Positions 4,395-64,000 of a stretch of DNA of 64,000 nucleotides are shown here, piece after piece. The first letter of the stretch is position 1. Every line of letters starts with the position of its first letter. Where the stretch lies: contig MCFE01000376.1 in the NCBI GenBank assembly GCA_002104905.1, positions 20,517 to 84,516 on the forward strand, read 5' to 3'. This DNA is from Basidiobolus meristosporus CBS 931.73 (lineage: Eukaryota; Fungi; Basidiobolomycota). The notes beneath the pieces were generated by a model, which saw only the letters and a program-made list of their open reading frames with translations, was not told where the DNA came from and ran no database searches. The position numbers and the translations under genes are program-made.

Positions 4395-4421
4395 GGCAAA
4401 TGTACTGCAAGGTGTACGTTA

Positions 4422-4448: not shown

Positions 4449-4923
4449 ATGAGGGATAAAATGCTTTTACCATTCGGCCAACTGGGGTGGAAAATCTCTG
4501 CATGGGGCCGAAATTTTGCGGATTTCCATCTCAGCTGCGGACAGATTCGAGATACCCCATACTAATTTAGAGTCGTGGTCACAGAAATCGATGGTTGATC
4601 TTACAAGGAATCAGGGATTGAACTTGAGGACAGCGCATGAAATGAAAAGCGCAACATGTAGAGAACACCACAGCAGGTCACTGGTGAATTTTCGGCCACT
4701 AACGAACCTTCAATCATAGGTTTCACAATTAAGACAACTTTTGTCTATGTTCCACAATATCATTTGCTTCATAATGTAGGCTCCCATCACTTTGCATGAA
4801 GATCCCATTGCGATTGGTAATGAGATCAAATAGAGTCTGACACGAGAAGGTCGCAGGGCAAAAGAGTGCACAGCTATATATTCGCACTTCCTCCTGGCCT
4901 GTGGATACCAACCTTTCTTCCAA

Positions 4924-5880: not shown

Positions 5881-5991
5881 TCCGAAAGCACCGTTGTTTA
5901 CTTTTGTCATTTTATCTTATTAAAATCGATAAGCAAGCGTCTAGGTTCTGGTGGTAACATTTGTGGCAACATTTACAATACTGAGTGCCAC

Positions 5992-7590: not shown

Positions 7591-7859
7591 ATAGTGAGCC
7601 ATTACCTCGGCAGCAGTATAAAAACGACTCCTGATCTTTTGGTATTTTTCTTTATACGCCATTTAAAGAGTTGTGAGTGTCTAGGGGTGAAGCAGGGACC
7701 AGTATAATGTTAAACTTGAATAAAAATTTCTTGACTAAGGTTGTGCTGTGCAAGTGGATAAATCATGCAAACTGCCAGATACACAGAGGATGGCTTTATT
7801 TAGAAATCTATAACAAAAATACCGTGGAAATCCTGATAATGATGGAGGTTGCTCGGGCC

Positions 7860-10433
7860 CTATAAAAGGAATACCTCAAGGAGCCCTTCAAGCTCCAAAG
7901 GTGGCTCGATTGCCACAACATGATGATCGGGTATCTGCTTTGGGTGCTCTCCGGATGGGAATACCGAGCGCAGCACTGAGGCTGCTTCATATGGTTTAAC
8001 TTCGTTCGAGATGGTGCCCACTGTGATATGCAGAAGTTTGCTAACTGCTGGCATATTCTCATGGCGAAGTCTGGCCTTCAAAACCATCAATTTGTCATTC
8101 CAAATCAAATGACTCGCTGTCACCGTCACTGACGGCTTTGCATTGTCTTTCATAAAATTCTCGTAATAATCAAACAATTTCTGATCTTTCAGCGATCTTT
8201 GCCCATCTCTTCTATGGACCAAAGTGATATGGTGGGGAATCTTGATGCGATCCTCTGATACCAGCTTGTGGAAAAACGTAGCATCAACATCAGGGTGCTG
8301 AGTGAAATACACCCGAAGTACATCCGGAATGTGATTCAACAATATGGCGAAATAGCCGATCTTCAGGCTCGTAAATGAGTTTTGATCTTTCCTGAAATTT
8401 GGCTTGTAATGAATAGCATGGTGTAGAGCTGCCTTGATCTTTGCTCCTCCAGGCTTCTGTCTATCAAGAAGTGGGCAGAGGGTGTCAAGTGCAGTCTGCA
8501 AATTAGTCTCGGCGTCCGCAAAGGGGTCCAGCTGAATTACTTCTGTTATTAAAGAGTCTGCATCTTGGTTAGGATCCACTGGCACATATTCGTTCAAAAA
8601 TCGGCCAAGGATAGACGGGAATCCTTTGGTTCGCATTGGTGTAAGTGATTGGTGGTTTTCCCCACGCGAAAGCAGTCTTCGATAGACAAGGTCGTATATT
8701 TTGTCGGGGGGATTCGCTCCAATAGACCAATGAACAGCTATAACGCTGGAGCCTGGATACTTGCTGAGAAAAACGTTGGTGAGGCCTTCTCTATTTCCAG
8801 GGATATGGTTGTTTCTACACACAAAATTGTGACTCTTGAGTAACATGCTCAGGTGGATCCGAAACAAGCCAATGCATACTTGTCCGCAAGAACGATGTCG
8901 TTTTGTTCAAATTCAGCCATGACCGCCTTTTCGAAGGCTATCTTTTTCTTTTTCTTCGACCCCAGGTTGTCGTTCTGAACACACTTGAATCCAAACAGCT
9001 TGGACAGAGCCAAGAACAAGGTTGTCTTGCCTAGAAAATACCCTTTCAATACACTGCCATGGGGAATCGATGCTAGCCTTTGTATTGCAGTTACCACATC
9101 CCGGAATCGCGACAGAAAAGATGAGGGTTTTCTTCGGCCCCTTGGGTTTCTCCACCACCAACGACATATTCGGGTTCTTTTTGTATTCCAAAAACATATT
9201 TCGGATCTTAATGATTCCGATCCCTTGAGTAAATGTCGTGAAAAGCTCCGGCTCCGTGTCAAGCATGTATTTCACCCAGATACCATAATCCTTCGTGAGC
9301 TCGTATCTATGTTTGTAGGGCTGTCCTCGGATGATACGAAGAGTAACCTCTCGCCACTCTCGGTACATGAGATATGGCTCATCGTATTTCACCTTAAAGA
9401 AGTGGACCTGGTTCTTATCGGTTCGTCTGCATCTCACAACAAACCCTTCTATAGCGCGACCTTGGTACACTCCACTCTCTCGAATCTCGTCTACGAAAGC
9501 GCGAACCTCACTTACTTGCTCCTTTGTTACCGAGCTCACTTCAAGAAACCCGAACTCCTGGGCACAGGCCCTCACCTCAGCTGAAGTCCACGTGTTGAGC
9601 TTCACCGAGTTGGAGTTAATTCCATGCAGATACATCCCAGAGCTTTCCATCGGATACTCAAGTACATGCTCTTCGAAAGTATCATCACAGAGCTAACAAG
9701 TTGAATTGTTAATGCGGCTTTTCATATTAGTCCCGATAGCCAAAGCCGTATCTCACCTCGAATACTGCAGTGATGTCGTGTTGGTGGAGAAAATCGTCGA
9801 AGTCGTCCAGTGTTTTCCCCTTAGTACGTAGATGCTTTAGCAGCCACTCCTGACCTTTTTCCGAATGAGATATGGTTCGATTCTCATTAGGTCCCCAGGC
9901 GTGCTTGCTTGTTACCAGTAAGCCGCCACTCGGGAGGCTTGAAACAAAGATAATGCAGCCATTCTCTTTAATAGTGACTTCATATGGACCTTGGGTATTT
10001 TGTTGGATCCAGTCCCACTACATAATGTTCGTTATTGACCGTTTCTACACAGGGGTCGCAATGCATATTTTGCTGCGGAATGGTTTGGGAATTGCATTTG
10101 CCATCATACCTCAGTTTGCTTAACCTCACCGATGTTGAAAAACTTATCGTAACCACGAATGACTATTTTGTGATGACCCTCTAGAGTGGTGGTGAATAGC
10201 CCACGGGCCAAGGTTGGAAAGGGGCAAGGATCTTGAGAGTAGAGGTACTCGGTAAACTTCCAACTTGAGATGGCCGTCCCCGAAGGGAGCTCATAAGTTT
10301 TACACCGAACAAAGCGTTTTTCCTTTTTCCCACCAGAGGTTTTTGGCTGACTGAGCTCAAGCAGCTCGTTTATCAGTTTATCTTCCTCGTCGAAGAGCGT
10401 AAGCTGTTCGGCACTCCTTACAATACCATTCAT
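7860..10433 (-). CDS. TRL1: Fungal tri-functional tRNA ligase (ligase-kinase-cyclic phosphodiesterase)
   Basis: RGYDKFFNIGE, motif I KENG, IEGFVVRC, FKVKYDEPYLMYREWRE, P-loop IPGCGK and two HIT(L/V) phosphodiesterase motifs. Confidence 0.95.
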
Positions 10434-10599
10434 GGTTGTTAAACCATTGTGCACAGCCAACCTATTTTATAGCAATGATCGATTCCAGCTGACCAATCAC
10501 TCCAATGGGAAAGCTATCATCAAGCTCATTCCATGTGGTGCGCAGCCATCCCAACGCGATAATGGTGAACTATTTAGACTCGTTATATGTAAACAAATA

Positions 10600-13500
10600 T
10601 ATATCGATGATTCTGAAGGATTTTCAATATTCACCTGTATATATTTATGTATATTTGGAAATATCAGACCTGCGCTTGTCAACATTAAGCCATAAGCCCT
10701 TACCCTAAGACTTGTGGAGCATGAGAAGAAGTCGTGAACTGTTTGAATCCGATTTTGAGGTTTGTCCACGTCTTATTGTCTGATCATATCACGAGATTAA
10801 CACCGAACTCCGGTTACCATTTGTACCTCGTAGAGCTGCATCTTGATCCATCCTCCGCAGAAGAAAGGTACCGAATTCACATTATAAACATTGAACGGAG
10901 CGCCGAAATTATCATACTAAGAACACATTCAGAGTATCGAATCGAGGATGGAGTGTCCCATTTTGAATTCGAAGGATTTCGCAAGCTATTGGGTGGACGT
11001 GAGGCTTGGGCGAACGTGAAGTTTCGATACCAACGCTATCTTAAGACCTGGAGTCTAATCAGGAACAAGATCCAGGTAACTACTTCAAGTAGATTAAGCT
11101 CCTTTCGTGTGCTGACCTTTCTTTTCTATCAAGAACACATACACCCAGTACAATAGCTACAATATCAGTCAGCTTTATGAGTTTGTGAGAAATAGCAAAA
11201 ATACCGCCCAGACATCCAGGTACCTTCTGTTCACCATCGATCCTAGGGATTGCTATCTAACAGAGCCCTCCTCGACTTAGACTTCCAGTGGGCTTGATCA
11301 CTACCGGTATATACTGTCAGGCACATACACAAAACCATATCGGCTAATGGCTTTTTTCAGAACATATTGAGGACGACGAATTCGTTATGAACAGCATTGC
11401 CACCACACTGCAGGAGAAATATCGAGCTCGCGTTGCCAGCATCAACCTTAGTTTTCTAAACAACCCAGCCACTATAACCAAAGCAATCATAGATCAGTTT
11501 GAAAACTCGCCCGTTAAAAATGTACTTCTGGCTGTGAACTCACTGTGTTGACGAAATCTGACAATGTTCTATATGGAATAGGTTTTGTCAAAGAAATTGT
11601 CGGCCAGTTCTTCGTCCAACATGACGCTATCCGAATGGTATACGAAAAAAGGGAAGTCTAAGAAACAAAGTGAAGGTACCTTCAACCAATGAAGCCTTAG
11701 ATATGTTGAGACCCATGTTGTAACGAATTCTTTCTATCCAGAGCGTGGAGATCTGGTCGTGCTGGTCAACTCCCACCCAACAGATTTCAATCGGATAGAA
11801 GAGTTCCTTAGATCATGCAAGTAAGTACTGAAGTACCTTATAACATCCTCACAATTCGTAGTTTTGGGTTTTTATTAATTCATACCGCACAACCTTAGAA
11901 AATCCTTGAGCCAAGTTCCGCTTTCGATTCTGGTGTGTAGCACAATCCCTGGAAATGAGTTAACTTCCAATCTTTCCTCGGACTTGGCCAACTCTTTGTA
12001 CACGGATACTTTTTCTGTACCAAGCACAATGAAATTCCTAGGCTATGCACTAGAGGAGGTATGCAGCATATGAAATCACGTGTGTCGCTCATCAACTAAG
12101 CCCACAACTTTCACACTTCTACCAAACTTTAGATATTTGTATCTGATCCCAATAGCTTCAAGCTGGGACTGGGACCGTTCAAGCTTTTGATCGATTTGGT
12201 CACAAATCAGAAAGTTTCTATCAGGGACTTTGGCAATCATATCAAGGTAACGTTCACCCTTGATAACCGTTGCATAATGTAGCCTGGTTAACAGCGATGA
12301 TATAGTACGCAGTAATGACTCAGTATTACTCCAATCCTCTCTCCATATTTTCTCTGGACAGAGATGACTTCCCTGATGTACACATGATATCTGATGATCA
12401 CCTAGAAATACTCCGGATGCAGCCCTCCTTTCGAAGGTATGTGATGCTCTTGCCGTGACTTGTTGCTCATGGAGTGCTAACGTTCTTCCAGATACCTGGA
12501 GTGCATTCAAGACGGGCAGGAGGTTATTCGCTTACTTGAAGAGGACGACTATATGATCTCGCGGATACCAGATTTCATCAGAGAATTCGAAGAGCATAGC
12601 ATTCGGTATTTTGCCGGTATCAAATGCGTCAGTATACTACAAGATAGCATCGGTGCGAGAACGTTCAAGAAGCCTGTGTATCTGCTCTATTTAGAGGGAT
12701 TAAGCACCAATCTCTCGGACTCGCAGCACGTAAAGCTGTTGCTTATATTACTGAAGTAAGCTAGCCGTCATTCATAATGCTCATGACATCGAGTACTAAC
12801 AGAACTCTGCGCCAGGACCATAAAGGAGGAGGAGCTAGCCCCATTCTTGAAGAAGATGTATGAATTCTTCAGCCGGTCATCCCTACTTTCAGATGTGTTC
12901 AAGAACGACATAGTGGCCTTAGCAAAGCTACATGAAAGCTTTCAAAATCTCAAAAATGAGAAGGATCCACAAGATGCATTGGAATCGATAGTCAACCAAA
13001 TGCATGAATTTTGTGCGCGCTTGCTCAGGTATTTAATTTTGATATCCACGCTAGCACCGGGCGGTTACCCTAACCAGCCATACCTTTCGCAAGGGAGAGC
13101 TTCATATGCTATGAGCACATGCCACTGTATGAACTATTCTACTTTTCCAATAGAGAGATTCTGAAATGGGTAAGTGTTGATCCTCGAATCAATCCGTAGC
13201 TTTGTTTCCCAGCATTGATGTTTGTGTGATTGAACCAGAATTTCAACCCGGACTATTTGAGTCTCGTGAACAGTGGGTTGGAACGACCAAGCTGCTACAT
13301 TAATTGCACCTGTTGTGAGGATAAATTCAGCCCGGCCCAGCACGATACATGTATTCTCTACAAGGTTTATTCGGAAAGCTCGGAATCCATCTTTTTAGAC
13401 GACTGGTACTTTGCATTCCGAGCGATAGTCAACCAGCAGGTGACCTTTGGTGAGCCCGAGCTAAGGTAGGCTGTGCTTCGTTTCCACCACGCTGTATCTT

Positions 13501-16303: not shown

Positions 16304-17022
16304 GCCGCACACACATCTCCCTTCATGGAACCAACATTAGTTAACACTCATCCTCATTTGTATTCTTACCAAGCGACTCGCCTCTCGTACCTTGGATTTC
16401 CCTTTATTTTAACCCGGCCGAACCTTGTAATATCGAACAATCCCCTTTTGATTCCTATATCACGATCCTTACTCATCCACTGATTAAAGTATTCGTATCT
16501 GAACCTCCAACAACCTTCCAGGTCCCAACTTTTCCCCGCCACTCCACATCGTCAAGCCATGAACGTCTACTTGCAGACGCATCCCAGGTGATGCCCGAGT
16601 CATCATGGAGTCAAAGTTACCTAGGTGGACGCACAAATAAGGGACCATTGCACTATCCATCCCACCATCCCACCATGCTAGATCATCTGAAAAGAAACAA
16701 GGGTCTTGTGATCATAACTGATGTAAAGCAACTGATTTGGAAAGCCATATGATTAGTAGATGGCTGGCATCCCATCTCGTACATGGATTTCCTTTTGACA
16801 GTCATGTGAAAATCCCCAACTGAAACAGTAACAAGTGCAGGCATCTCGCTCATTGGTCTTGGCTTTCATCTACCTTTACGGCTTGGGATGGATTTAAATG
16901 CTGTGCGGTCAGCTCCTAGGTTTCGCCTAATCTTCTCCTCATCGTCTTCCCACACTTCATTGGATCTCACCGCCCCTTTGCTTCCACTTAACAAATACCA
17001 CTATTCCTTGGAGCCCGATATC

Positions 17023-17994
17023 ATGAAGTGTGCATCACGGAAGACTGCCCTCCTATCCTCAATAGCCTCTGGGATTGTTCTCGTCGCCTCGGGGGTTTAC
17101 TGGTGGTATACGAGCAGCATGTATGTCTCGGAAGAGGCGATTTCCCATGAGGAGCAAGAAATCGTCAGCTTCGTGCACGAGGTAGGTGGCAACCTAGTTC
17201 ACCCGTCCCGATGGGCCAGTTGATTCATAGGACGTTCTGTCGGTTAGGTTCAACGCCAGAGAAATTCCCTCGCCAACCTCCTGAACCCCGTCTCGAAGAC
17301 CAAACCCGTCATGACCATCTCTTTGAAGAATGTAAGTGCAGGTCGATGTCACCTACAGCCTGGATTTTCACTAAGATTCCCGGATTTATCTTAGATCGTC
17401 GTATGGAGCCCATCCCCGGATCCGAAGTCTCCCAATTACGCATTTCTAGAGGGGACAGTCCCGATGTTGCGCACACTGTCACGCCTGTATGACCTGTATC
17501 TTTTGATGCAGATGTCCAGCCCAGAAGAGCGACAACAGATCATCCACCTGTTCACATCAGCCGGGCTGTTCAGGGCCTCGAAGCCCGGGAGGGAGGATTG
17601 GATCGACCGAAGCCGTCTGGTGTTTTGCCAAAGCCCGGAAGGGAAGGAATACATAGCTCGGAACCTTTGCTCCTTTGTACATATCGACGACGACCTAACA
17701 ACCATCCGGAACTTGACCCCGTTCGTAAAAAGATTCATTTGGGTCAGGCGGACAAGCCGGGATCGTCAATACAACTCGTTTGATACGAAGCCCTATTCGC
17801 CTCTTCATGCCAAGAATGAGCCGAAGGCTCTCAACTCGGGCCTGATGCTCGGACACGTGTCAGCCAAGTCGGTCTGGTCGGAAGTCCTGGCCTCCAATCT
17901 GGACCATCTAGAGATATGTGATGATGTAGTCAAGAGTAGCATAAACCCTAACCGATCCCTCCAGAAAACCGCCCCTTTTTACCATTCATTGTAA
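17023..17994 (+). CDS. PEX22-like peroxisomal membrane protein (plant/protist type, HAD-like fold)
   Basis: N-terminal TM (GIVLVASGVYWWY) then YDLYLLMQM...LFTSAGLF...RLVFCQSPEGKEYIARNL...VHIDDD...LTPFVKRFIWV, resembling plant PEX22 from memory. Confidence 0.6.
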
Positions 17995-47718: not shown

Positions 47719-48052
47719 TGTTGTAAAAATTCGGAATTCCACCTAAATATTCACCTAACTTAGTCACTTAGATCATTACCTTCAAATCCTAGAGAATACT
47801 GACCAAATTCCTTGGTGGAATTTACTTAGAATATTTACCCAGAACATGAAAATTAGATAAGTTGTCCAAACAGCCCCAAACTTTGCACACATGTTCTTGG
47901 GACCTTCCTTAACCTATTCTATGTGCTTGTTATGCCAAGACCAGGTAAAAGTATAGAATACTACTTGTACATTCAATAAATCATTAAGTGAAAACCACAA
48001 AATCTACTTGTCCTCCCAAATCACTTCCAATATCTCCAAGACTCTTACAACA
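47719..48052 (+). mobile_element. Solo Ty1/Copia LTR, 334 bp, with 5-bp target-site duplication TTTGT
   Basis: Begins TGTTG, ends CAACA; TTTGT at 47714-47718 and 48053-48057; near-identical to the LTR preceding PBS and gag at 52623. Confidence 0.9.
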
Positions 48053-48162: not shown

Positions 48163-48512
48163 TGCTGTAAGAGTCTTGGAGATATTGGAAGTGATTTGGG
48201 AGGACAAGTAGATTTTGTGGTTTTCACTTAATGGTTTATTGAATGTAAAAGTAGTATTTATGCTTTTACATGGTCTTGGCATAACTAACATGTAGAATAT
48301 GCTAACAAAGGTCTCAAGAACATGTGTCCAAAGTTTAGGGCTGTTTGGTCAACTTATCTAACTTTCATGATCTGGGTACCTGATGTTTTGGTGAAAATAT
48401 TCCAAGTAAATCCCAACAAGGAATTTGGTCAGCATTCTTTGAGATTTGTAGGTAAGGATCTAAATAACTAAGTTGGGTGAATATTTAGGTGGAATTACAA
48501 ATTTTTACAACA
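48163..48512 (-). mobile_element. Solo Copia LTR in reverse orientation, 350 bp, with near-perfect TSD
   Basis: Reverse complement of the same family (TGTTG...CAGCA); flanks GAGAA and GAAAA differ at one base. Confidence 0.85.
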
Positions 48513-49057: not shown

Positions 49058-49396
49058 TGTTGCAATGTTTGCAATCCTCCTAAATACTGACCTAACTTAG
49101 TCACTTAAAGCATTACCTACAAATCTTAGAGAATACTGACTAAATTTTTGTATGGACTTAAAATATTTTCACCAAAATATCAGGTACCCAGAACATGAAG
49201 ATTCTCAAGGTTGACCAAACAGCCCAAACTTTGCACACTTGCTCTTGGGACCTGCCTAAAGATATTCTATGTGCTTGTTTTGCCAAGAATGGGCAAAGTA
49301 TAAAACTACTTTTACATTCAATAAATCATCAAGTGAAAACCACATAATCTACTTGTTCTCCCAATCACTTCCAGTATCCCCAAAACTCTTACAGCA
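49058..49396 (+). mobile_element. Older solo Copia LTR of the same family
   Basis: TGTTGCAATG...cctaacttagtcactt...cccaaactttgcacac...actcttacagca; no matching TSD. Confidence 0.8.
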
Positions 49397-51608: not shown

Positions 51609-52622
51609 TTTGGTAGGATGTCGTATGATGTGTATAATATAGAATGAGAGCCAGTGAAGGTGTTATAAATAAAATGCTTCTATTGACGTAATCCACCCGA
51701 GCAGAAAACACATGGCAATGTGATTGAGACATGGCGCTTGTACTACCACTAACAGTTGTTCCGCATATTGACTACAAATCAATTCTTATATTATTGGTGC
51801 ATGCAGTTTGGTAATTCCGCCTTGTCACTAAATTACGTGTACAGCTATGCAACCAAAGAATGAAGAATGAGAGGATCCTATTGGCATTGCAGAAATCAAA
51901 GTGATTACTTTCATCGAGGCTTTTCAGAAGTGCAAGTGTATGCTATGACTGCGTATCTTCATGACATCTGTCCTCTGCTTTTTGCTATTTGATGGTTGTA
52001 TTAATCTAATATTATCTCTTCTAATTCTTAAACCGTAAGCATTGCACATGGGAGTCAGCATGGACTTCTCTTTTGCAAACTGCCTCAATGGCAAATTTAC
52101 TTAACAGCATCATTGCAAATGCCATTGATCTTGCTATATGTTACTCTCAAATGTAAAGCAATACTCTTGACAGAAGCAAATTCTCTAGCATTAATTATAC
52201 AATGCACCTTTAATATTATCATTCTGTCAAAATTTCAAGGTAATGCAAGTATTGTATCCAAGAGAAAAGTGTAATAAAACTCCTGAATGGTTTAACTGAA
52301 CCAAAGGGATAATTAAGTGCAGTATCTTACAATTGACAGAGAGTGGCAGAAATATTAGCATAGTGATTCGCATCTAATATTTGTCTTGTAAATGGCTGGA
52401 TTTGGCTATAAGGGCAATGGAGTTGGTTTGCAATGCAGGCTAGGCTTGAGCAGAAACTAGAACAAAATTGGGGGGAATCTCAATTTTGCTGAGACACAAT
52501 CTTACTTTTGTTGAGACACACATTAAGCCAAAAGGCTCATTAAACTTTATTCATACTTTTCTATCAAGTCAAGTTAATAAGTGCCAACAGGCTGCATTAA
52601 TTGATATCAATTTGGGTGCTCA

Positions 52623-53076
52623 TGTTGTAAAAAATTTGTAATTCCACCTAAATATTCACCTAACTTAGTCACTTAGACCATTACCTTCAAATTGTAGAGA
52701 ATACTGACCAAATTCCTTGTTGGAATTTACTTAGAATATTTACCCAGAACATGAAAATTAGATAAGTTGTCCAAACATCCCCAAACTTTGCACACATGTT
52801 CTTGGGACCTTCCTTAACCTATTCTACATGTTTTTAATGCCAAGACCAGGTAAAAGTATAAAAACTACTTTACATTCAATATATCATTAAGTGAAAAACT
52901 ACATAATAGGCTTGTTCCATTGTGCCATTGATCATAGTGCCAGAGAGTGCTGTATATTTTGTTTTTAATTTGATATTTTAGGGTCATATGCATGTCAATA
53001 TCAGCTGGAATGATGGAACAAGTCAATTTAACTTGCTCTCCCAATCACTTCCAATATCTCCAAGACTCATACAACA
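52623..53076 (+). mobile_element. 5' LTR of a truncated Ty1/Copia element, containing an internal insertion of about 115 bp
   Basis: TGTTG...CAACA; near-identical to 47719-48052 apart from extra sequence at about 52917-53030; directly followed by a PBS. Confidence 0.88.
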
Positions 53077-53087
53077 GGTTATGAGCC
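53077..53087 (+). promoter_or_regulatory. Copia primer-binding site (internal 'half-tRNA' iMet type)
   Basis: GGTTATGAGCC immediately after the LTR-terminal CA; complementary to the iMet-tRNA anticodon arm, as in copia/Ty5-type elements. Confidence 0.8.
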
Positions 53088-53549
53088 GCAAGCTGTCACT
53101 CTCTGGAATGTCCAATACTGCTATTACTGGAATTTTCCCCTCTTCTGAAAAGTGGGATGGATCTAACTACCAAGTGTGGAAGGTGAAGATGAAGATGCTG
53201 CTACAAGAAAGAGGCCTTTGGGATATTGTCATGGGAGAAGAATGCCCTCCTAAAAACGTGGGAGAGGAAGCCTTAAAGTACCAGAAGAAAGAACATAGTG
53301 CCTTTAACTGCATTTGCCTTAATGTTAAGGACAAATTGCTAATTCAATACTCAAGAGCAAAAATGGCAAAGAATGCCTGGAAGACATTAGAAGACACCTA
53401 CCAGTCATGTTCAGCTGCTAAGAAAATGTATCTGAGACAAATATTCTTTACTACAAAGATGTAGCCAGGAGAAGAAATGAAAAATCTAATAACAGAATTA
53501 CCCTGCTGGTAGATGAGATGGAATCTGTGGGGGTACCAACTAATGATGA
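53081..53549 (+). pseudogene. Copia gag N-terminus, disrupted and truncated
   Basis: KWDGSNYQVWKVKMKMLLQERGLWDIV...AFNCICLNV...AKNAWKTLEDTY...KKMYLRQIFFTTKM*PGE; in-frame stop at 53462; ends abruptly at GGGTTAG. Confidence 0.85.
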
Positions 53550-54041
53550 GGGTTAGGGGGGAGGAAAGTCACCAAGTGGTTAAATCTTTATATACCTATG
53601 ACAAGTATCTAAAGAAGCCAAGTTAATCTGAAGTAACTCCTAGAAAGCTAGGTCTGAGAGATATCTTCCTGGTAAGCCAGGTCTGAGAGTTGAGAAGCTG
53701 AGAGGTACTATATTTCCTAGTTAGCTAGGTCTGAGAGAGGTTTCCTGGAAAGCCAGGCCTGAGAAGTGAGAATCTGAATATATCTGAGCTAAGTTATACT
53801 GGTTTGCGGTAGCTGGGTTGTGGCCGGAAAGGCCAGTAGACTGGGGGAACTGAGATGAATTTCTGGGCGATCACTAGCCATATTTACTAGGCAAATCTGG
53901 CCATTAGCATTTCAAGGATTTCAGCCAATCAGAGCCTTTACTTTGCCCAATGGTTGATCAAGCCATCTCCCAATGAGCACACATCAATTTATTAATCAAA
54001 TTTTTGCTGGATCCAGGATTTGAACCCACAACCATGGGTAT
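53550..54041 (-). mobile_element. Putative tRNA-derived SINE (partial head, repeat-containing body, LINE-type 3' tail)
   Basis: Minus strand: GGTTGTGGGTTCAAATCCTGG (B box at 54016-54026), internal TTCCTRG.AGCYAGGTCTGAGAG repeats at about 53637-53770, 3' tail 36/42 identical to the tail of the adjacent LINE. Confidence 0.6.
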
Positions 54042-55160
54042 GGGTTAGGGTTAGGGGGGGTGACAGTCACCAACAGGTGAAATCTTTATTTCAGTTGAAA
54101 CAAAGAAGCCAGCGCTACTGTTGTAGCTTTGATACAAGAGTGTGTAGCTGAGGGGAATTTGTAGGTAAGTTAATAAGAAGTGATGATAGCTCTTCAGTGC
54201 TCAAGACACTGTTCAGTGGGAAGGGGGGTAGCAAGAGAGGTAAGAATGACTTGTGAACAACATTAATGAGGGGAATGTGATAAGGATTGATATTCATCAT
54301 AAATGGAGTGTGCTGCTGCAGATATTGCTGCCAAAGGTCTGTCAAGTACTTCAGGTAGGCCAGCTTGGGTTTTTCTGACTGCAGAATAAAGTGAGCAAAC
54401 TTCTTGACTTCAGGATCTCCAAGTATAGTTCTCCAGCAGGAGCCAGGTGTTGTGTGGTGTGTTCTCTTCCAGGCCTTAATCAGTGGGTTGTTGCAGTTGT
54501 GAAGTCTGAGGTATAATCTGGTTCTAAGGTAGAGAAGTCTGATCTTGTAGGGCATGAACCCAAAAGCACCAAGAATAGCATGTCTGTAGGGGCATTCAGG
54601 CAAATGAGGCACCAAGGAGGTAATGCACCATACTGCAAACTTGTCAAGCTTAGTGCAGTCTCTAGAAGTAAGAGAGAGAAGTGGTAAGCCAAATTCCAGG
54701 ACAGGGAAGACAAACTGCTTGAGTAGAAGGAGGCAGCTGGGAGCTGAAGTTGTAGGAGGAGTAACAGCCAACAGCTTGTGGAGTGCCTGTCTTGCAAGGA
54801 TAATTCTCTTCTTCAGGTGTGCCCCAGAGTCTAGTCCAGTAGGAAGGAAAGGAAAGCCAAGATATGTAGCAGAAACCTGAGCAGGTAGAGTGGAGTTCTC
54901 CAAGTTGATGGGAGAGCCCAAAGGTACTGTCTTTGCAATGGAAAGCTGGAGATTATTCTTCTGCAGATACTGGTGGATGGTCTGGGAGTCTTGTTGCACA
55001 TTGGAGGAGGATATTCTGATGTCATCAGCAAAGAGAGTAACCAGGCAGTCAGCTGAGAGTCTTGGGAAATCATTCAGGAAGATGGCAAACAGTTTAGGAC
55101 CAAGCACAGAGCCTTGAACCACTCCATTAGGAACTGAGAACACAGCTGATTGCTCACTTG
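54042..55160 (-). mobile_element. 5'-truncated non-LTR retrotransposon (LINE): RT C-terminal half, short 3' UTR, C7-(TAACCC)2 tail
   Basis: Uninterrupted ORF 54115-55143 with GVVQGSVLGPKLFAIFLND, LFADD and YLG; ORF starts mid-RT; tail at 54042-54089. Confidence 0.88.
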
Positions 55161-55426
55161 GGTGCAGGTGTTATAGTAAAGGCCAGGAAAAGGTTAGAAG
55201 AGCAGGGGGTCTGGGGGACGCAGTCCCCTAGAGAATAAAAAAGCAGGGGTTTGGGGGATGCAATCCCCCATACTGCTCCCATACTCTTTAAAGGGTGTAG
55301 GTGTTATAGTAAGGGCTAGGAAAAGGTTACAAGAGCAGGGGGTCTGGGGGACGCAGTCCCCTAGAGAATAAAAAAGCAGGGGGTTTGGGGGATGCAATCC
55401 CCCATACTGCTCCCATACTCTTTAAA
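55160..55426. repeat. Two tandem copies of a 133/134-bp unit, each with two GC-rich GCA-triloop hairpins
   Basis: Units start at 55160 and 55293; GGGGAC-GCA-GTCCCC and GGGGGAT-GCA-ATCCCCC in each. Confidence 0.9.
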
Positions 55427-55929
55427 TTCCTTTTGGATTACTTTTCTCTCATTCTTGGTTCTGGTCCCTTAGGGTTAGAATTCCTCCTCCTAACCCTTAT
55501 CACCCTAACCATAAATATTTTTACCCTACAATTGGCACATTGTCTGCTCATATAGTGGGCATGTCTGGGCCAGTATTTGTCTCCCTATACTGTCCATATG
55601 CTCTGTATAAGTCTTGATGACTATTTAATTAATAAATTGTTATTTTTAATGTATATCTAATAATTAATGGGATTCATCCCAATCTTACCACAATCCCATA
55701 TTTTGATAAGCTTTGGGCACCATAGATTGTGCGACCCTAATATGATAAAAAATTCATGGCCAATACAAATTTTCTGTAACCCAATTGCTTTTACCAAATA
55801 TAAAGTGTATCCCAAAGTTCAATATATATTATGGCTATAATAGAAACTTTATTTGACACCATTGCAACTACTACTTATGTTCTATGCGCACATGTATCCC
55901 GCGGGAATTGTAAAACTTAGCCACGTGGT

Positions 55930-56478
55930 ACAAAAGTGCTTTTCATTTTCATCATGATAGTTTTACATGAGTTCCTAATGCACTTTGAAAGTACGCAGTA
56001 GCCATACCCCAACAGGTTTTAAGGATGTCCACTAGCTACGTCTACTTGTGTCTAGTGGGAGCCATCAATCATCAGCCGCGCAATACTGAAATGCTTTTAT
56101 TTTTCATCATGCTAGTTTTGTATGAATCCCTAACGCACTTTCATGGTGCGCGGTAACCATACCCCAACCGGTTTTAAGGATACCCACTTGCTACATTTAC
56201 TTGTGTCTAACGGGAGTCATCAATCATCAGCCGCGCGGTAATAAAGTGCTTTTATTTTTCATCATGATAGTTTTACATGAGTCCTTAACGCACTTTCATA
56301 GTGCGCGGTAACCATACCCCAACAGGTTTTAAGGATACCCACTTGCTACATTTACTTGTGTCTAGCGGGAGTTATCAATCATCAGCCGCGCAGTAATAAA
56401 GTGCTTTTATTTTTCATCATGATAGTTTTACATGAGTCCCTAACGCACTTTTATAGTGCGTGGTAACCATACCCCCAG
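55930..56478. repeat. 155-bp tandem array, about 3.5 copies
   Basis: TGCTTTT anchors at 55937, 56092, 56247 and 56402. Confidence 0.92.
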
Positions 56479-56934
56479 AAAGTAGTGTGGATGCTTACTT
56501 TAAATGCTCACTTGTGTATTGTACGGACTATCAACAAACAGCCGTGTGGGAATGGAACATCATAGAAAAGCATTGCTTTGTTGTTAGCAAGTATTGATGC
56601 GCAAATAGTGGTACTATGTGAATTATTGAGTAGCTATTTACTCTAGTTGGTTCCAAGATATTCCTAGACAATATGCTCAAAATCAATATTAGCATCAATA
56701 GCTTGCTCTTTGATCACTAAACCACCGCACCCAATATGCGGTGGCCTTGGTTTTGTCTAGCCGTTGAGGAATGAAACCAGAGTACAGTCACAAGAGAGGC
56801 AAAAGTGAAATGTGATGAAGTAAGTGTATATGAAAGTAATATAAATCTACAGGACAGAAGAGAACAACTAGTAGTTAAACAGCACTCACTGACACTCCAC
56901 CAAGTAGAGCACCAACACGGACAATAAACAAGTC

Positions 56935-57396
56935 ATGAGGGGAAAGCTTAAGGACCGCTACTCGGGGATCAAGACCAAAAGAGGAAGCTGCCTCTACCAT
57001 AGCAGTCCTTGCGCTCCAAAGGAAGACCAAGAGCCTATTATAGACAAAGATTGCGGCGAGAAGAGCAGTACAATTACCAGTTCTGGTAGTGGTACCTTTG
57101 GAAGTCCCAAATACCTGGAGAAAACTCAGAAAAAATTGGCAGATGACTCAGTTGTCCTGAGGAGAAAACAAACCAATGCAATTGAGCAGTTCCGAAACAA
57201 ACTTCAGCTTAGTTCTTCTTTGCCTCACTATAAAGTACTCCAAGTGGCTTATTTGGATTATAAGTGTATGAAGGAGAATCAGGCAGAGACTGATAAATTA
57301 AGTGATAGTCAATTGCATCACTTCTTAGATCAGGTAGAGAAACAGTTGCACAGCCAAGAGACGGAACAAGAATTGACAATTACAGAAACCAAATAA
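56935..57396 (+). CDS. Hypothetical intronless protein, 153 aa
   Basis: ATG-initiated ORF with charged/helical composition and an AATAAA-rich 3' flank; no family recognised. Confidence 0.4.
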   Translation: MRGKLKDRYSGIKTKRGSCLYHSSPCAPKEDQEPIIDKDCGEKSSTITSSGSGTFGSPKYLEKTQKKLADDSVVLRRKQTNAIEQFRNKLQLSSSLPHYKVLQVAYLDYKCMKENQAETDKLSDSQLHHFLDQVEKQLHSQETEQELTITETK

Positions 57397-57628
57397 TTTT
57401 GCCAATGTAGTTTTGCATTTTAATAAAATAAAAGGGTGTTAATAAGAACAGAATAAAGTTAACTTATGTGTACATCAAATGATTCAAATACTGGCTAGAT
57501 GGATGTTACGTAGGAGCAAGAAGCTCAGTAACCTCAAAGGAAAGATATGATGAATGGGCCACTGACATTATCCAAATGAGTATAAAAGTGGAGAAAGGAG
57601 ACATAATCCTTCATAAAAAACAAGAAGC

Positions 57629-58414
57629 ATGGAAGCAGGCAGTAGCCGGGTAGATGCCAGGAGTGAAGGTAGAGTACAAAGAGAGCAAGGAAGGGGACAA
57701 GGACGCAGAAGAGGACGCGGAACTGGGCGCGGAAGAGGAAGAGGGCAAGGAAGTGGCCAAATCCAAGAGGAGCATGAAGGAGGTGTTGCAGCAAACGTGG
57801 ATGATGCTGAGCAAGTTGCTGTAGTCACTACCAGGCGGCCAGTCAACCAAGTTTCCCAAGCATTGTCAGAGGTTTGACAAGAGCTTCCGGAATATAGGAC
57901 AACATTGCACCATGAGATATTGCAACGTATGTGCCAGGAGATTAAACAGAGGAGGGGTGATATTGTAAAGCTAAATTGGGATATTGCTGGACTTCAAGCC
58001 CAGATTGATTTCAGTTTCCACCATTCTACTGAGGCATTAGTGGCACAAATGGTGGAAAAGTTTGCCCGCATCAGGGCAAGCAATGAGCAGGGTGCATCTT
58101 CCAACCCAGGTGTACTTGCGAGCGACAGTATTGGAGGGGATACTACTTCCTCCCTTGAACCTACCACAAACCAAGAGACAAGAGCAGAATCCTCCACAAC
58201 AATGAGAATGGCCCCCACGCAGGTTGATATGGAAGTGTGCAAAGAAGACGTGGAGAAGCAGAGTGGGGATACTATAGGCCAACCAGAAACTGTAATGGAG
58301 GCGGAGAGACCAAGTCATATTGTCATCTTAAAAATACCACAGGTTGATTCATTGCTATCACTTCCCCCATCATCACTATCTGTGCCCCCATCACCACCGC
58401 CATCCTCTGGCTAA
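57629..58414 (+). pseudogene. Disrupted gene: RG-rich basic tract, coiled coil, S/T/E-rich tail
   Basis: ORFs 57629-57877 and 57905-58414 are in the same frame, separated by one TGA. Confidence 0.5.
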
Positions 58415-58606
58415 CTTGAGTAAATAAAGAATTTCCACCATCCCAAATCAATGAATTGACAAGTAATAAGTTGAACTGATAAGATTGACGATTTACAGAC
58501 TAATATATGTAAAGTATGTAGTACTTAAGAGCTTTCAAGTTGTGGTGTATTATCAAGTATTCACCGTCACATAAATCATCGCAGCAGTTGTTGTATCCCT
58601 ATCCCA

Positions 58607-59534
58607 ATGGCATTAGAAGCCAGCAGTTACAAGGAGCATTGGAAAAATTTTGGCGTTTACCTGGCGACGGTGGCAGGTGTAACAAAACGCAGCTATTGCT
58701 CAATGACCATTACCCCGTCTATGAGATACTTGCTATTATATGGAGGGTATTCTGTTGAGCACTTTCAAGACAGCAAAATATCCCCGCCTTATGATGAGCG
58801 TATAGCTGAAGAAACATCCGGCCGCATGGAATACTCTATGAGCCCAGCTCAAAGGTTCAAATGATTCACCTTGCAGATCTACACGGTGATGAAGACATCA
58901 CAGTGACAGTTCTCCCGACTCCAGACAACATATCAACTACAGAGGCAGCCAAAGGGGTGATTTTAATTGGCAACAGCTGTGCTAGTGACCACGAGAATCT
59001 CTACATATATGGTGGTTTTGAGCTGAGCCGTAGAGAATACTCAGGGCAACATGAAAGTGCCAAAAAACGGGGAAAAAAGCAATACAAAGCAAGAGTGGGG
59101 AGACAATCAATAGAAGACTGAGCAAGCTGGAGGTAATCACGTACAAAGATGGCAATGGATGCTCCAGAGTATTGGAGACAAGGCCATTCTTGAATAATCC
59201 GGCAAATATGCCTTCAGCAAGAGGTTGGGCAGTTCTTACGTACGCATTTGATTGCTTATTCTTGCTGGGCGGCTATCCTACACCATTGGAACCACCTTAT
59301 ACCCAACCAAATGGGAGTTTTTTAAACAAGTTCTACTGTTTAAAATTGCAAACTGGTGATTGGGAAAGACAATATGTACACTCAGCAATACAGGAGCTTG
59401 GAGAAAACTTTATTGCTGTGGTAAACGAGTATGGCAACCAAATCCAATACATCAACAATGCAAATGTTACATTCACCTATGATGTCAATAATCAGATCTG
59501 GATTACCCTCCCAATCCAAGTCAGGAAGAAATGA
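58607..59534 (+). pseudogene. Kelch-repeat (beta-propeller) gene broken by frameshifts
   Basis: Kelch-like units RSYCSMT...LLLYGGY, LYIYGGF, PSARGWAVLTYAFDCLFLLGGYP and FTYDVNNQIW spread over three ORFs in different frames. Confidence 0.65.
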
Positions 59535-61435
59535 GTACAAAGCAGCTACTAGGGCGCATTCTTAATGAATTGGCAGCAATCTCTCAGCGGCACAAGAGGG
59601 AAGGCAAAGGAAGTGCTGAGACTGAAAATATCTTGCGGCATAGTGCCCATGGTCTTACTGTCCCACTTAAGAACCATCAAGCATTTGGCGTACAATGGCT
59701 GATGTATACAGAGGCCATCCATAAAGGAGCATTGCTTGCCAATTCCATGGGACTTGGAAAGACATTGCAGATATTAAGTCTCATATTGGAGACACCTGAG
59801 CAAAGGCCAAATCTTATTGTTGTCACGCTTGGAATACTTCTCAATTGGGTGATGGAGATAAAGACAAAAACAAGGATATCCAATGAAGAGCTTCATGTAT
59901 TTCATGGAAAATTCCGAGCTATCAAGAAGTCAGATATGGAGACTAAGAGGATCGTGCTCACCACCTACCACACACTATGTGTTGAAGCAAGGAACCCTGA
60001 TTTGCCTATATGGAATGTGAAATTTGGCCGAATAGTGGCCAATGAGGCAGATACACTTAAGAACTACGAAGGCGGTAGCTTAAACGCAGTGAGTAAAATT
60101 GATGGAGAATCCTTGATACTTGTCACTGCCACCCCATTCCAAAATGAGATTATGGATCTTTATTCATATTTCACATTATTCAATCTATGGGAAGGCATTC
60201 CAAAGGATTTCCATCAACTCCTACTTGAGGAGGCCAATGCAAACAGGCTAGTTGAATGGGTTGTAGAAAGACTTGGCCCATTAATATTGAGACGCGTTCC
60301 AGAGTCGCAAATATTTGGAGAACGCGCAGTATCCATGCCTAGTATTCAAGAGCAGATTGTCTTGTGCCAATTCTTGCCGGAGGAGCTGCAGGAGTACAAA
60401 CAACTGCAGTCAAGTCTTCCAGAGGAAGTCGGTTGGATGGGTGCAAATACCTATCTGCGTCTGTACTCATGCCATCCATATATGTATACCTGGAGCAGGA
60501 AGAGGAATCGACTGAAAAAAGCGGCTGATGCTAGCATTGTCCAAGATGTCGAGATGAGTGAGGATGATTTTCTACCTGAGATTGATGAGGATCTTGAGGT
60601 GGTTGCGGTTGAGGTTGAGGAGCAGCTTCAAGAGATTAATAGCAAAGAGGTTGACAGCTCATCCAACGTTCCATCTACTTCTGCACCAACTGCCATACGC
60701 ACCAAAGACGCCCCTACAATTGCCCAAAGAGGGCTTGCGTTAGAGGACTCCAACAGGGTATTCATCCAAGATTTCCTCACTGGTGTAACCAACAACACTG
60801 TGAACGAGCATAGTGGCAAAACTTGGAAAATCATGGAAATCCTGCTTGAAATCCAAGAAAATAAGGAGCACGCACGTGTTATTATTTTTTCTGGGTTTAA
60901 TCTGATGCTTGACATAGTGGCTTACCATTTGAGGGAGCAGAGCATTGAACATCTGAAGATTACCGGTTCCACCCCAGTTTGGATACAAAAGAGCAGTATA
61001 GATACATTTGCATTGCCAGTTCCGGAGGGCGAGATTTGTGTGTTACTGATCAACATCAAATGTGGCGCATTTGGATTAAATTTGCAGATGGCATCGGCGG
61101 TGATCATTGCCGACAATTGGTGGAATCCCTATGTAGAAATCCAAGCAAAGGCCAGAGTTTGGAGGGTGAATCAACCAAATAATGTTTCTAGTTACCAGTT
61201 AGTCATGCAAGATTCCATTGAAGCTCAGGGTGTAATTGACAGTCAAACTCGTAAGATTGGCTTATTTGGCCAGATTACGCATACGTTGGTAGATGAAGCA
61301 TCCAAAGTACCAATTTCATTACAACTTCAAGAGCAAGATGATCGGTACTTGAGCCAATTACATGAAGCGCAAGGCAGTGGATCTCTGATGCACAAAGATG
61401 AAGAGGAGGTTGATGAGACGACAGATGAGGAGTAA
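59531..61435 (+). CDS. Intronless SNF2-family ATPase (Rad5/Rad16/TTF2-like, no RING) with degenerate motifs
   Basis: LKNHQAFGVQWL, LANSMGLGKT, VLTTYHTL, ANEADTLKN, TATPFQN, IIFSGFNLMLDI, GLNLQMASAVIIADNWWNPYVEIQAKARVWRVNQ. Confidence 0.88.
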   Translation: MSTKQLLGRILNELAAISQRHKREGKGSAETENILRHSAHGLTVPLKNHQAFGVQWLMYTEAIHKGALLANSMGLGKTLQILSLILETPEQRPNLIVVTLGILLNWVMEIKTKTRISNEELHVFHGKFRAIKKSDMETKRIVLTTYHTLCVEARNPDLPIWNVKFGRIVANEADTLKNYEGGSLNAVSKIDGESLILVTATPFQNEIMDLYSYFTLFNLWEGIPKDFHQLLLEEANANRLVEWVVERLGPLILRRVPESQIFGERAVSMPSIQEQIVLCQFLPEELQEYKQLQSSLPEEVGWMGANTYLRLYSCHPYMYTWSRKRNRLKKAADASIVQDVEMSEDDFLPEIDEDLEVVAVEVEEQLQEINSKEVDSSSNVPSTSAPTAIRTKDAPTIAQRGLALEDSNRVFIQDFLTGVTNNTVNEHSGKTWKIMEILLEIQENKEHARVIIFSGFNLMLDIVAYHLREQSIEHLKITGSTPVWIQKSSIDTFALPVPEGEICVLLINIKCGAFGLNLQMASAVIIADNWWNPYVEIQAKARVWRVNQPNNVSSYQLVMQDSIEAQGVIDSQTRKIGLFGQITHTLVDEASKVPISLQLQEQDDRYLSQLHEAQGSGSLMHKDEEEVDETTDEE

Positions 61436-61629
61436 ATAGGGGTTGCAATGTACCAGGAATCAAGTATGCCAGACTCAAGGTAGTAGTAGCTACTATTGGT
61501 AAATAAACAATGAGCCTAATCTTTTTGCACAAGAAGGGTGGGAGAGGGAGAGGGAGAGAGAAAAGTCAGAGTGGTACAGTCTAAATAAAAAAGGGTGCAA
61601 GAGTTTTATGGTGATGAAGATAAACATGC

Positions 61630-61940
61630 ATTTGGTGCCGCGTGGTGGTGTTGGGGATTCATCAGGCACAAATGAAAGTGCAATACTAGAATATAGTGAT
61701 GAGAATAACCATAGGTTTGGTGCCGCGCGGTGCCAATTTGGTATTGAGATTCATCAGGCACAAATGAGAGTGCAATACTAGAATATGGTGATGAGAATAA
61801 CCATAGGTTTGGTGCCGCGCGGTGCCAATTTGGTATTGAGATTCATCAGGCACAAATGAGAGTGCGATACTAGAATATGGTGATGAGAATAACCATAGGT
61901 TTGGTGCCGCGCGGTGCCAATTTGGTTTTAAGATTCATCA
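61630..61940. repeat. 92-bp tandem array, about 3.3 copies
   Basis: ATAGGTTTGG anchors at 61711, 61803 and 61895; each unit carries TGGTGCCGCGCGGTGCCA. Confidence 0.92.
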
Positions 61941-62466
61941 ATATGCGGTAATGAATGATTTGATATGTGCCTTTGTTGGATGGATGACATGCGTTAGTTG
62001 GTACTAAAATAGTCTACTCCAACAAAAACCGCAGGGTATGCCCCCGTGTCTGTTTCATGGGGTTCAGTAAATCACCCAGGGCTATATAAAAATGAAGACC
62101 TCTTCTGTAAGGTATTCAGACACAGACGCAAGAGTTAGTGAAGTACTTGAATCTTACTCACAATTGTAAGCAATGGACTTTCAGTTAGGCAAGAAGTCTT
62201 ACCTAAGGTAAGTTGAGCTTTGAAGATTCTAGAAAGGACTTGAGCGTCTTGGTTGCTGCTAATAGCATTCAAGTAAGAACTGATTTGGTGGCAATTGTGC
62301 GCTAGGGTTGGAAGCAATAGCACATCTGGGCAACATATATTCATTGAGAATAACTACTGTCAGGCTGCTAGAACTTCCTCCGGATCCCAAAGCGCTTTAC
62401 ACTTAGAGCAGGGCAAGAGCAGTCACCAGCATGGACAATGCGTAAATCCCAGAAAGAGAACGCGAC

Positions 62467-64000
62467 GTGGCAAAAAACATTCCCGAAGCCAAGAAGAACA
62501 GAAGGGTAGCACTAAATGGGGAAGTACGCATTTTAGGAATGAGGCAGGTGATGGAAACATTGGTTGCAACGCAGAAAGGGCAGCAAGAAAAGAGCACCCA
62601 ACCTGGATTGAAAGGCGGTGATACTTGCAGAGTAGGCATGGTGCGTGAATATCTGGGTGAAAATCAGGATCCTGGAAATGATTTTGGCGACCTTGATGTG
62701 GATATCATGAGTAGTGAATACAGCACAGATCAGGGATCCATTGGGGGCATATCAGAGGAGAACATTGCCCAAGCAACAATTCGAAGTGGCATCAAATGGT
62801 GATCATTCAAACGGGCTTAGTAATTGTTGCACAACCACAGGGGAAGAAAGAAGCACTGAGAAGCTACATGGCCTACCGCACACTGCACGTGGTACAAGAG
62901 GTAGAAGGGAGCAATTTGTAAGCAATGAAAATATCAACGTGGTCATTGAAGATTTAATACTTGAGCAAAATGAGGTCCAGCGTACTGAAGGAAGAGTGTC
63001 AATTGCGGAAATTGAAAGAGCGGCTAGAAGCATAATACTGCCCACCTTAGCCCATTCCGATGAGGGCAATAGCGCTGTGGAAGCTGAGACTACAAGTGGA
63101 CTGGTGGGAGGAGCCTTGTCTCTTAATAAAGTATCAGCAGGGGGCTCTGGATACTTTTCTACCAAAGGAGCACTTGATCTGGACCAGGCTGCGCAGCTTG
63201 GGGGGTTACTTCAGCACTATAACACACCAATGAATGAATCTGAATTGGCACTTATCAATATCATGAGGGCTGAGTTCATGAATTTTTGGCTGGAGAAATT
63301 TTACCAAGAGCCAGAAAAAATGTCTCAAATTTCCCATGGGAACCGTGGTCTTAAGGGGTTATTGTGCACGCAGGCAAATGTTTACTGGAATTTGACAATC
63401 AAGCAGTTCATTTTGTTTTCCATGCGCCTATGCCAACCGGATATAAGAAGCCCTCAGGCGTATTGGGCTGTAGTGGGGGTGAAGGCCAACGTAGACTCCT
63501 ACTTGATGCTACAAAAGGGTAGGCACGGTTCTGCGCCACTAAGTGCATCCACTTTGAACAATATCTTTCATCATTTAATGAAGGCAGTATATCTTTACAA
63601 TATTTGCTACAATCCAAAGACAAAAGACAAGCCGCATGTACGCTGTGATGTGGAGATGCATCTACGCGCACTAGGTAGTGTAGCTGGGCAATTGAAAAAC
63701 CAGCATACTTTTGAACGAAGGCAAAAGCGAGTGACTGAATGTACCAGGGAAGAGGAAGCACCAACTACTCAAGAAGTGGGATTTTTATTTTCTCGGCTTC
63801 TTGAGAGTATGCAAGCTATATTGGAGACAGTGCTTCCAAGGGGTGAGTTGAATTATGAGGTGGTTCAAAACAAAAATTACACAAAGCAGCAGCAATATTC
63901 ACTTGGGAAGTGGAGCTTTGTCACAACACCAATGGAAAAGTTAATTGCGCATCTAAAGGAGAGTTTGAGGTGTGAGCAAGCATACCGGCTGCTCCAACAG
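62467..64000 (+). CDS. Long ORF running off the window; putative tyrosine-recombinase N-terminal (core-binding) region, with probable frameshift near 62790
   Basis: Hand translation shows no stop from 62711 to 64000 (430 codons; first ATG 63230). Contains TIKQFILF...NVDSYLML...LSASTLNNIFHHLMKAVYL...APTTQEVGFL. ORF 62467-62802 is probably its N-terminus in another frame. Confidence 0.5.

Follow-up and report, generated by a model that had tools for sequence, protein, structure and literature searches.

We analysed the last 64 kb of contig MCFE01000376.1 (84,516 bp) of the fungus Basidiobolus meristosporus CBS 931.73 (64,000 nucleotides of the forward strand, hereafter the window), in particular its right-hand part, for which an initial annotation had proposed a large cargo-carrying DNA element. 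On balance, this region probably belongs to a telomere-resident element, here called B, of which a dead copy is present with its proximal 8.8 kb. B is a kind of telomere-associated element that is new to description; it is not a giant transposon with cargo, nor is it a virus buried in the genome. A full-text search of the literature on subtelomeric, recombinase and SNF2 elements and on Basidiobolus found no account of such an element, and the gene set and the terminus of B are without earlier description. With good confidence, we further propose that B spreads by templated extension of the eroded 3' end of a chromosome, copying being begun at a fixed terminus of the element.

Copies of element B and their position

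Nine copies were fetched and compared, namely the window copy (locus L004) and those at loci L002, L003, L005, L006, L007, L009, L010 and L013. The window copy is collinear, at 96-98% identity, with L005 (positions 2965-11841), L003, L002, L006, L007, L010 and L013. Among the B copies, the intact set of four open reading frames (ORFs) was seen in one, at L005, which is the terminal part of contig MCFE01000042.1 (202 kb). B occupies 11.2 kb of this locus (2965 to about 14195), and its four uninterrupted, intronless and co-oriented ORFs comprise 153 aa, 261 aa, 964 codons and 842 codons. The unit size of the B family is 11-12 kb. The right edge of the window coincides with the end of its contig (window positions 52173-64000 are identical to the last 11,828 bases), so that 68% of the last gene, ORF4, is present and its recombinase-like C-terminal domain falls past the contig end. 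The earlier impression of a multicopy, silenced and mobile-looking element is borne out. In exact-sequence look-up, the protein clusters of ORF1 and ORF2 have 18 and 20 members, respectively, distributed over about two dozen contigs of a single genome. The SNF2 frame of the window (59531-61435) is 96-97% identical to two proteins of the same strain. Neither terminal inverted repeats nor long direct repeats were found in B.

A second family, which we refer to as B2, was found at locus L009, where the largest contig, MCFE01000001.1, ends, and has four genes in an order identical to that of B. The proteins of the two families share 42-55% amino acid identity, with ORF1 at 42%. The proportion of synonymous differences between B and B2 (pS) is 0.75-0.89, in other words saturated, while that of nonsynonymous differences (pN) is 0.28-0.40. 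All four proteins have, therefore, been maintained by purifying selection across the long B/B2 divergence; the L009 copy of B2 is itself now broken. Such long-term selection in turn means that the four proteins serve either the element or the chromosome end. The idea of a large cargo-carrying element does not survive these comparisons: the complete unit measures 11.2 kb, no cargo is evident in it, and B and B2 have one and the same set of four genes. Its start had been placed at 55930, whereas the real start is 55160.

Each of the nine copies is situated at the end of a contig, with its ORFs directed outward. Three loci (L001, L007 and L009) terminate in at least 200 bp of (TTAGGG)n on the + strand and are, therefore, real chromosome ends. 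The host genes on the proximal side differ between copies (MFS, OPT, rhodanese, COX5B/Erg28 and GDPD). This telomere-directed position of every copy at a contig or chromosome end is the decisive fact about the region; it lay outside the view of the initial annotation, which missed the telomeric context.

Junctions, terminus and the telomeric mosaic

The proximal terminus of B is constant in all copies and begins GGGTGTAGGTGTTATAG, which looks like a degenerate telomere repeat. It is formed by a 133-bp unit that begins GGGTG(C/T)AGGTGTTATAG and contains two G-rich hairpins, including a LINE-like motif; the unit is doubled in the window copy and single in the other eight. The terminus abuts eight different partners. 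Several of these are pieces of a long interspersed nuclear element (LINE), truncated to 325, 854, 1121, 2757 (at the B2 copy) and >3349 bp, and the others are a 130-bp stub of a related retroelement, a piece resembling a short interspersed nuclear element (SINE) and, in L007, a copia gag cut inside DUF4219. In all copies, partner and terminus are separated by 0 to 2.5 telomere units or imperfect variants of them. Comparison with uncut copies of the partners was used to judge microhomology. At the window joint, the next eight bases of the LINE match the first eight of B at 7/8, and the variant base of the LINE is retained; at the L007 joint, three bases are common to partner and B.

The distal end is variable. 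B breaks off within ORF3 in L006, L007, L010 and L001; in the first two, telomere repeats cap it immediately, and in the last two, the LINE or another element comes next. In L005, B is complete, and beyond it lie TTAGGTTAGGG and the 3' end of a fresh LINE. At no copy compared does the distal sequence continue the proximal one. The junction pattern is, therefore, one of successive additions onto eroded ends and not of insertion into a target.

The motif GGGGGNNNMAGTCMCC is confined to the 3' ends of the LINE and to the first 70 bases of B and B2, and is always on the + strand. The terminal 133 bp are 88% identical between B and B2, compared with 67-78% for the genes at the DNA level, and in both families the folding of this unit into its two G-rich hairpins has a z-score of about -3.4. 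Taken together, the greater identity and the stable hairpins mark the terminus as the most constrained DNA of B, as would be expected of a cis-acting site. About 300 bp into B, telomere-like hexamers in both orientations occur inside 45 bases (55467-55510).

These junctions bear on a rival explanation of the copies, namely that B is an ordinary subtelomeric block of host genes, segmentally duplicated between chromosome ends and not itself mobile. Subtelomeres are often duplicated between chromosomes, the copies are 96-98% alike, and gene conversion could yield the incongruent sharing of mutations among copies that is described below. Yet eight different sequences abut an identical terminus, which points to a discrete end joined independently many times; the deeply diverged B2 retains the same terminus, gene order and position; and the proximal flanks carry unrelated host genes. 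We therefore consider this explanation improbable.

The sequence preceding B in the window is itself a mosaic of telomere-attached pieces (Table 1). Starting from 53549, the order is a broken copia element, a telomere remnant, the SINE-like piece, a second remnant, the truncated LINE and B. The telomeric sequence GGGTTAGGG occurs three times in the window, in each case on the + strand and within 53550-54056, against 0.24 occurrences expected. Full ORFs of the same LINE encode Exo_endo_phos and RVT_1 domains. Copies of the LINE at other loci are 98-99.7% identical and are cut at the 5' side differently each time, whereas the 3' end faces the centromere and is joined to 1 to 2.5 TTAGGG units at every locus. 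An endonuclease with a reverse transcriptase (RT), a telomere-joined 3' end and variable 5' truncation, which together mark a telomere-attached LINE, are thus all found here. A Penelope-like identity was also considered for this RT element and rejected, as it carries an apurinic/apyrimidinic (AP) endonuclease. The SINE-like piece has a 3' tail resembling that of the LINE and adjoins B directly in L002 and L006; a tRNA origin was rejected for it, since ARAGORN detects no tRNA. No Rfam family was found over 52000-64000.

The copia piece is the final non-telomeric sequence on the arm, and it breaks off exactly at the start of the telomere-attached mosaic. Further copies of the copia long terminal repeat (LTR) lie in the low-GC tract before it, at 47719-48052, 48163-48512 (inverted), 49068-49396 and 52621-52917. 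A complete copia is found in L010 (12590-17278) within ORF3 of the B copy, with LTRs at 12591-12940 and 16928-17277 and a gag-pol of 1367 codons that was typed by Pfam. The genes to the left of the mosaic are ordinary fungal ones, including tRNA ligase, HMG-CoA synthase, a DEAD-box helicase, a homeobox gene and an amine oxidase.

Similar mosaics are seen at other loci. In L013 (6488-8352), three stacked 5'-truncated LINE fragments, 87%, 98% and 99% identical to the reference LINE, lie between unique DNA and B; these fragments of different ages represent repeated rounds of end erosion and addition. Another repeat is found beside LINE 3' ends at L001 (2123-4875), L009 (1-231), L006 (4979-5380) and in the window (52252-52623). 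In L001, it directly follows the B copy cut within ORF3, and its minus-strand ORF of 255 codons has no family match. This repeat may be another telomere-associated family. Finally, a decayed fragment of an ABC transporter gene lies on the minus strand distal to B2 in L009 (14530-15378). It is cut, with GGGTTAGGG and a LINE as its cap, and may either belong to B2 as cargo or be left over from an earlier chromosome end.

Table 1. Features of element B and of the telomere-attached pieces preceding it, in window coordinates
Feature	Position	Strand	Remarks
Ty1/copia LTR retrotransposon, 5' part	53031..53551	+	Distal end cut off; 94.8% identical to the L010 copia
SINE-like non-autonomous retroelement 'A'	53549..54041	-	3' end attached to GGGTTAGGG remnant
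Telomere-repeat remnant GGGTTAGGGTTAGGG	54042..54056	+	G-strand on +
5'-truncated non-LTR retrotransposon (LINE)	54047..55167	-	3' end joins telomere remnant; RVT_1 on ORF 54115-55143(-)
Element B, decayed copy	55160..64000	+	Contig end cuts last gene; collinear with L005:2965-11841
Proximal terminus of B	55160..55426	+	Two 133-bp tandem units
Tandem array, 155 bp x 3.5	55933..56475		4.5 units in L005
ORF1, 153 aa	56935..57396	+	Intact; no family match
ORF2, RG-rich N-terminus, then coiled-coil-like part	57629..58414	+	One stop; 261 aa in L005
ORF3, kelch-like propeller fused to SNF2-family ATPase	58540..61435	+	Four frameshifting indels; 964 codons in L005
Tandem array, 92 bp x ~3.6	61607..61940		Between ORF3 and ORF4
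ORF4, N-terminal two thirds	62295..64000	+	Two frameshifts and one in-frame indel; 842 codons in L005

Genes, the recombinase-like ORF4 and decay of the window copy

The initial annotation described plus-strand, intronless genes between two tandem arrays sharing motifs. The orientation and the lack of introns hold, since all sizeable ORFs between the arrays are on the + strand and those of L005 are uninterrupted. The arrays are likewise real, but their mutual likeness is not significant: local alignment of the 155-bp and 92-bp arrays gives z-scores of 0.6 and 0.3 against shuffles, and their kinship was rejected. Kelch repeats and a SNF2 ATPase, which had been listed as two genes, belong to a single 964-codon gene in the intact copy, giving four genes instead of five. 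Of its two parts, the SNF2 one is a solid match (Pfam SNF2-rel_dom, 5e-31; Helicase_C, 5e-15), whereas the kelch match is weak and under the Pfam cut-off. The standard SNF2 motifs are present in the intact copy. By sequence, the nearest solved structure is the Sulfolobus SNF2/Rad54-like protein 1z63, followed by Fft3/Fun30 and Chd1. Relatives outside the species are mostly bacterial, and those from Xylaria and bacteria reach about 28-36% identity.

Intronless co-oriented genes, among them orphans and a SNF2-type ATPase whose closest relatives are prokaryote-like and not host-like, are also what might be expected of an endogenised DNA virus or of a virus-like sequence, for instance part of a giant virus or a Polinton-like element. 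This possibility, raised from the window sequence at the outset, is met by nothing viral either in the window or in the full-length unit. The capsid, polB and packaging ATPase genes noted as missing from the window are missing from the complete L005 copy as well, and the four ORFs that make up its 11.2 kb match no family of capsids, polymerases, packaging ATPases, proteases or integrases; SNF2, Helicase_C and weak kelch are their sole domain matches, and PHROGs yields none. Pfam matches to virus-named families are far under the cut-off (E 0.013-0.33) and were treated as noise. In addition, a strictly telomeric position and end-joined termini are unlike a provirus, and a viral origin is in our view very improbable.

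The identity of ORF4 is a more delicate matter. In P0123 and in the L005 copy, an Arg, a Lys placed in a predicted beta-hairpin, R-D-L-R-R-W and H-H-P-S-T-x-x-x-x-Y occur within its C-terminal 200 residues. They form an R...K...RxxR...H...Y pattern resembling that of tyrosine recombinases (YRs). Compared by eye with the verified integrase of plasmid NC_014504.1, the pattern agrees with that enzyme in order and spacing. The RDLRRW and HHPST blocks are also the best-conserved protein stretch between B and B2. Aligned with the same integrase by hhalign, ORF4 gives a sole segment, which pairs RDLRRW with HDLRRT at a probability of 0.1, and Smith-Waterman alignment to the plasmid recombinase gives z = 1.1 against shuffles. 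With the Pfam threshold relaxed to an E of 10, neither DUF3435 nor Phage_integrase was matched by the window frame, P0121, P0122, P0123 or the L005 ORF4 (P0121 and P0123 being database gene models with predicted introns, used unchanged). PHROGs gave no match for ORF4, and neither did sequence and profile searches of the PDB. An exhaustive phmmer search of 1.84 billion proteins found same-species copies only, and neither a word-index protein search nor tblastn against phages gave a significant match. The 430-codon open frame that runs off the window end (62711-64000) has no family match in Pfam or PDB. Two AlphaFold models of ORF4 have predicted local distance difference test scores (pLDDT) of 28 and 41, both below 45. 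No annotated recombinase was found in the Gordonia phage NC_048820.1. Thus the YR-like ORF of the initial annotation has its motifs in the right order and spacing, but no tool detects a recombinase, and we describe ORF4 as recombinase-like by motifs only.

If ORF4 did encode a YR, B could be a Crypton-type DNA transposon or a small analogue of Starships, excised as a circle and integrated site-specifically into telomere repeats, with the SNF2 protein and the two small proteins as accessories. The motifs, their conservation and the hhalign pairing with the recombinase box speak for this, as do the telomere-repeat units on each side of the full-length L005 copy. As in Cryptons, terminal inverted repeats are lacking, and a YR would be the sole recombination enzyme. 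Set against these points are the failure of every search tool to find a recombinase and the junctions, which are unlike those of site-specific recombination. The L005 copy has a 325-bp LINE stub to its left and, to its right, the 3' end of a fresh LINE, and the L007 copy lies between a cut copia and the telomere, so that in neither case do halves of one target stand on the two sides. The proximal partners have no common core site past GGG, and all junctions hold at most 2.5 repeat units, which is unexpected of random integration in a long telomere tract. B also differs from Cryptons in having no detectable homology to known YRs, in its extra conserved genes and in its solely telomeric location. 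Starships carry a DUF3435 captain first at the 5' end and cargo of tens to hundreds of kb. The proposed resemblance to them reduces to a fungal multi-gene element with a YR-like gene: B has no DUF3435 captain, its YR-like gene is the last and not the first, and, unlike the Starships of Pezizomycotina, it is 11 kb long, has no variable cargo, belongs to a non-Dikarya host and is telomeric. Transposition of the Crypton or Starship kind consequently appears unlikely.

The window copy itself is inactive, three of its four genes being broken and its TCG sites hypermutated. Damage was scored relative to the intact L005 copy. The annotated damage with a transition bias is confirmed for most genes, with 92 transitions to 6 transversions, while ORF1 is intact. 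In ORF3, a stretch of 634 codons covering the SNF2 part remains open, and 26 codon differences alter amino acids, one of them inside a catalytic ATPase motif. For the hypermutation analysis, window positions 56476-64000 were compared with L005 (4150-11841) and L003. With L003 as the third sequence, 62 of the 65 changes derived in the window are C-to-T or G-to-A, of which 60 are at CpG and 51 at TpCpG. Of the 118 TpCpG cytosines, 67 (57%) are altered relative to the intact copy, as against 2-6.5% for other CpG and <0.5% for non-CpG cytosines. Identical TCG sites are altered in differing, mutually incongruent subsets of copies, and L005 has no such changes. TCG-targeted hypermutation of repeats is known in Pucciniomycotina (PMC12730594), which the pattern in the window resembles. 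Our literature search found nothing on TCG hypermutation for Basidiobolus.

Mode of spread and relation to known telomeric elements

How might such an element reach chromosome ends? In the mechanism that we favour, an eroded 3' end would prime the copying of a template whose start is the terminus of B. Priming of this kind would keep the proximal end fixed and the orientation uniform, with microhomology at the joints and a distal end that varies. Together, B, the telomere-attached LINE and its SINE-like partner make up the terminal mosaic that separates unique DNA from the TTAGGG telomere.

The nature of the template is less certain. Our tentative preference, rated slightly likelier than a DNA template, is for an antisense transcript of B copied by the RT of the co-resident LINE. 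B would in this case be a giant non-autonomous passenger whose terminus mimics the 3' end of the LINE. Copying from RNA would account for the LINE-like motif, for the junction style common to LINE, SINE and B, and for a start at the exact terminus despite a homology of 1-3 bases. It is also possible that the template is the DNA of another chromosome end, used in break-induced replication of the Y' type. This route has precedent, would make gene orientation irrelevant and could plausibly be helped by a SNF2/Rad54-like motor and a recombinase; it would account less well for the exact terminus.

Several points weigh against extension of eroded ends, and in particular against its RNA form. The latter would need an 11-kb antisense RNA, which is purely hypothetical here. 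B encodes no RT, all its ORFs are antisense to the RNA that a retro route needs, and we know of no precedent for ORFs antisense to such a template. Moreover, passive mobilisation leaves selection on the four sense-strand genes unaccounted for. As regards position, contig ends fall in repeats for assembly reasons too, and a telomere is proven only at the three loci with TTAGGG arrays. The ABC transporter fragment distal to B2 in L009 means that B2 was not always the outermost sequence. The draft assembly contains a single full-length copy, which alone defines the distal terminus. Lastly, the GGGGGNNNMAGTCMCC pattern was set post hoc, and its chance figure of 0.02 per window overstates the significance.

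Among known systems, B appears closest in behaviour to the Y' elements of yeast and to telomeric retroelement arrays. Yeast Y' and the fungal TLH (RecQ-type) blocks are multicopy units of several kb that lie in fixed orientation just inside the telomere and encode an ATPase of the helicase superfamily. They have short interstitial telomere repeats on their proximal side, are similar between chromosome ends and are thought to have spread by copying from end to end. B likewise lies directly inside the telomere, in a fixed orientation in nine of nine copies, with short interstitial repeats and an ATPase gene. Unlike Y' and TLH, its motor is of the SNF2 family and is fused to a kelch-like propeller, instead of being Y'-Help1 or RecQ, and it has three more conserved genes, one of them recombinase-like. 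Its junctions differ as well, being often near repeat-free, with microhomology to its own LINE-3'-mimicking terminus.

The second likeness is to retroelements, for which Drosophila HeT-A/TART/TAHRE, Bombyx TRAS/SART, Magnaporthe MoTeR and Cryptococcus Cnl1 served as comparators. The LINE and the SINE-like piece resemble these in their centromere-facing 3' ends on telomere repeats, variable 5' truncation and head-to-tail stacking at chromosome ends. A difference is that canonical TTAGGG repeats are still found at the very ends here. B shares with the LINE and the SINE-like piece the junction style, the orientation of its fixed end and a terminal motif, but it differs from telomeric retrotransposons in having neither RT nor gag and in that its genes lie opposite to the presumed RNA template. 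Terminons (Athena) of rotifer telomeres are similar to B in being large, in having several co-oriented ORFs, including a coiled-coil one, and in their telomere-like terminal repeats. They are, however, built around a Penelope-like RT of their own, and their ORFs are sense to the RNA; B is without RT, the RT element beside it is of the AP-endonuclease LINE type, and the ORFs of B are on the strand opposite to that RT.

Considered most broadly, B would represent an unrecognised class of mobile element dedicated to telomeres and lacking a polymerase of its own. It would be written onto eroded ends from a LINE-mimicking terminus, either by the LINE RT acting on an antisense transcript or by end-copying with the aid of its own motor and recombinase. 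LINE, SINE and B would then jointly constitute a second, element-based layer of end maintenance beside telomerase in an early-diverging fungus. We regard this as a speculation, and a doubtful one in such a complete form. It has long been suspected that telomere repeats with a helicase gene, Y' among them, are what is left of mobile elements, and the B. meristosporus genome is a better test case than Y' for both the mode of spread and the roles of the genes, for it offers an intact four-gene copy, a selected sister family, many independent junctions and a resident LINE and SINE. These findings also extend telomere-attached retroelement arrays to a non-Dikarya fungus that keeps TTAGGG telomeres, and TCG-targeted hypermutation of repeats to a non-Dikarya lineage.

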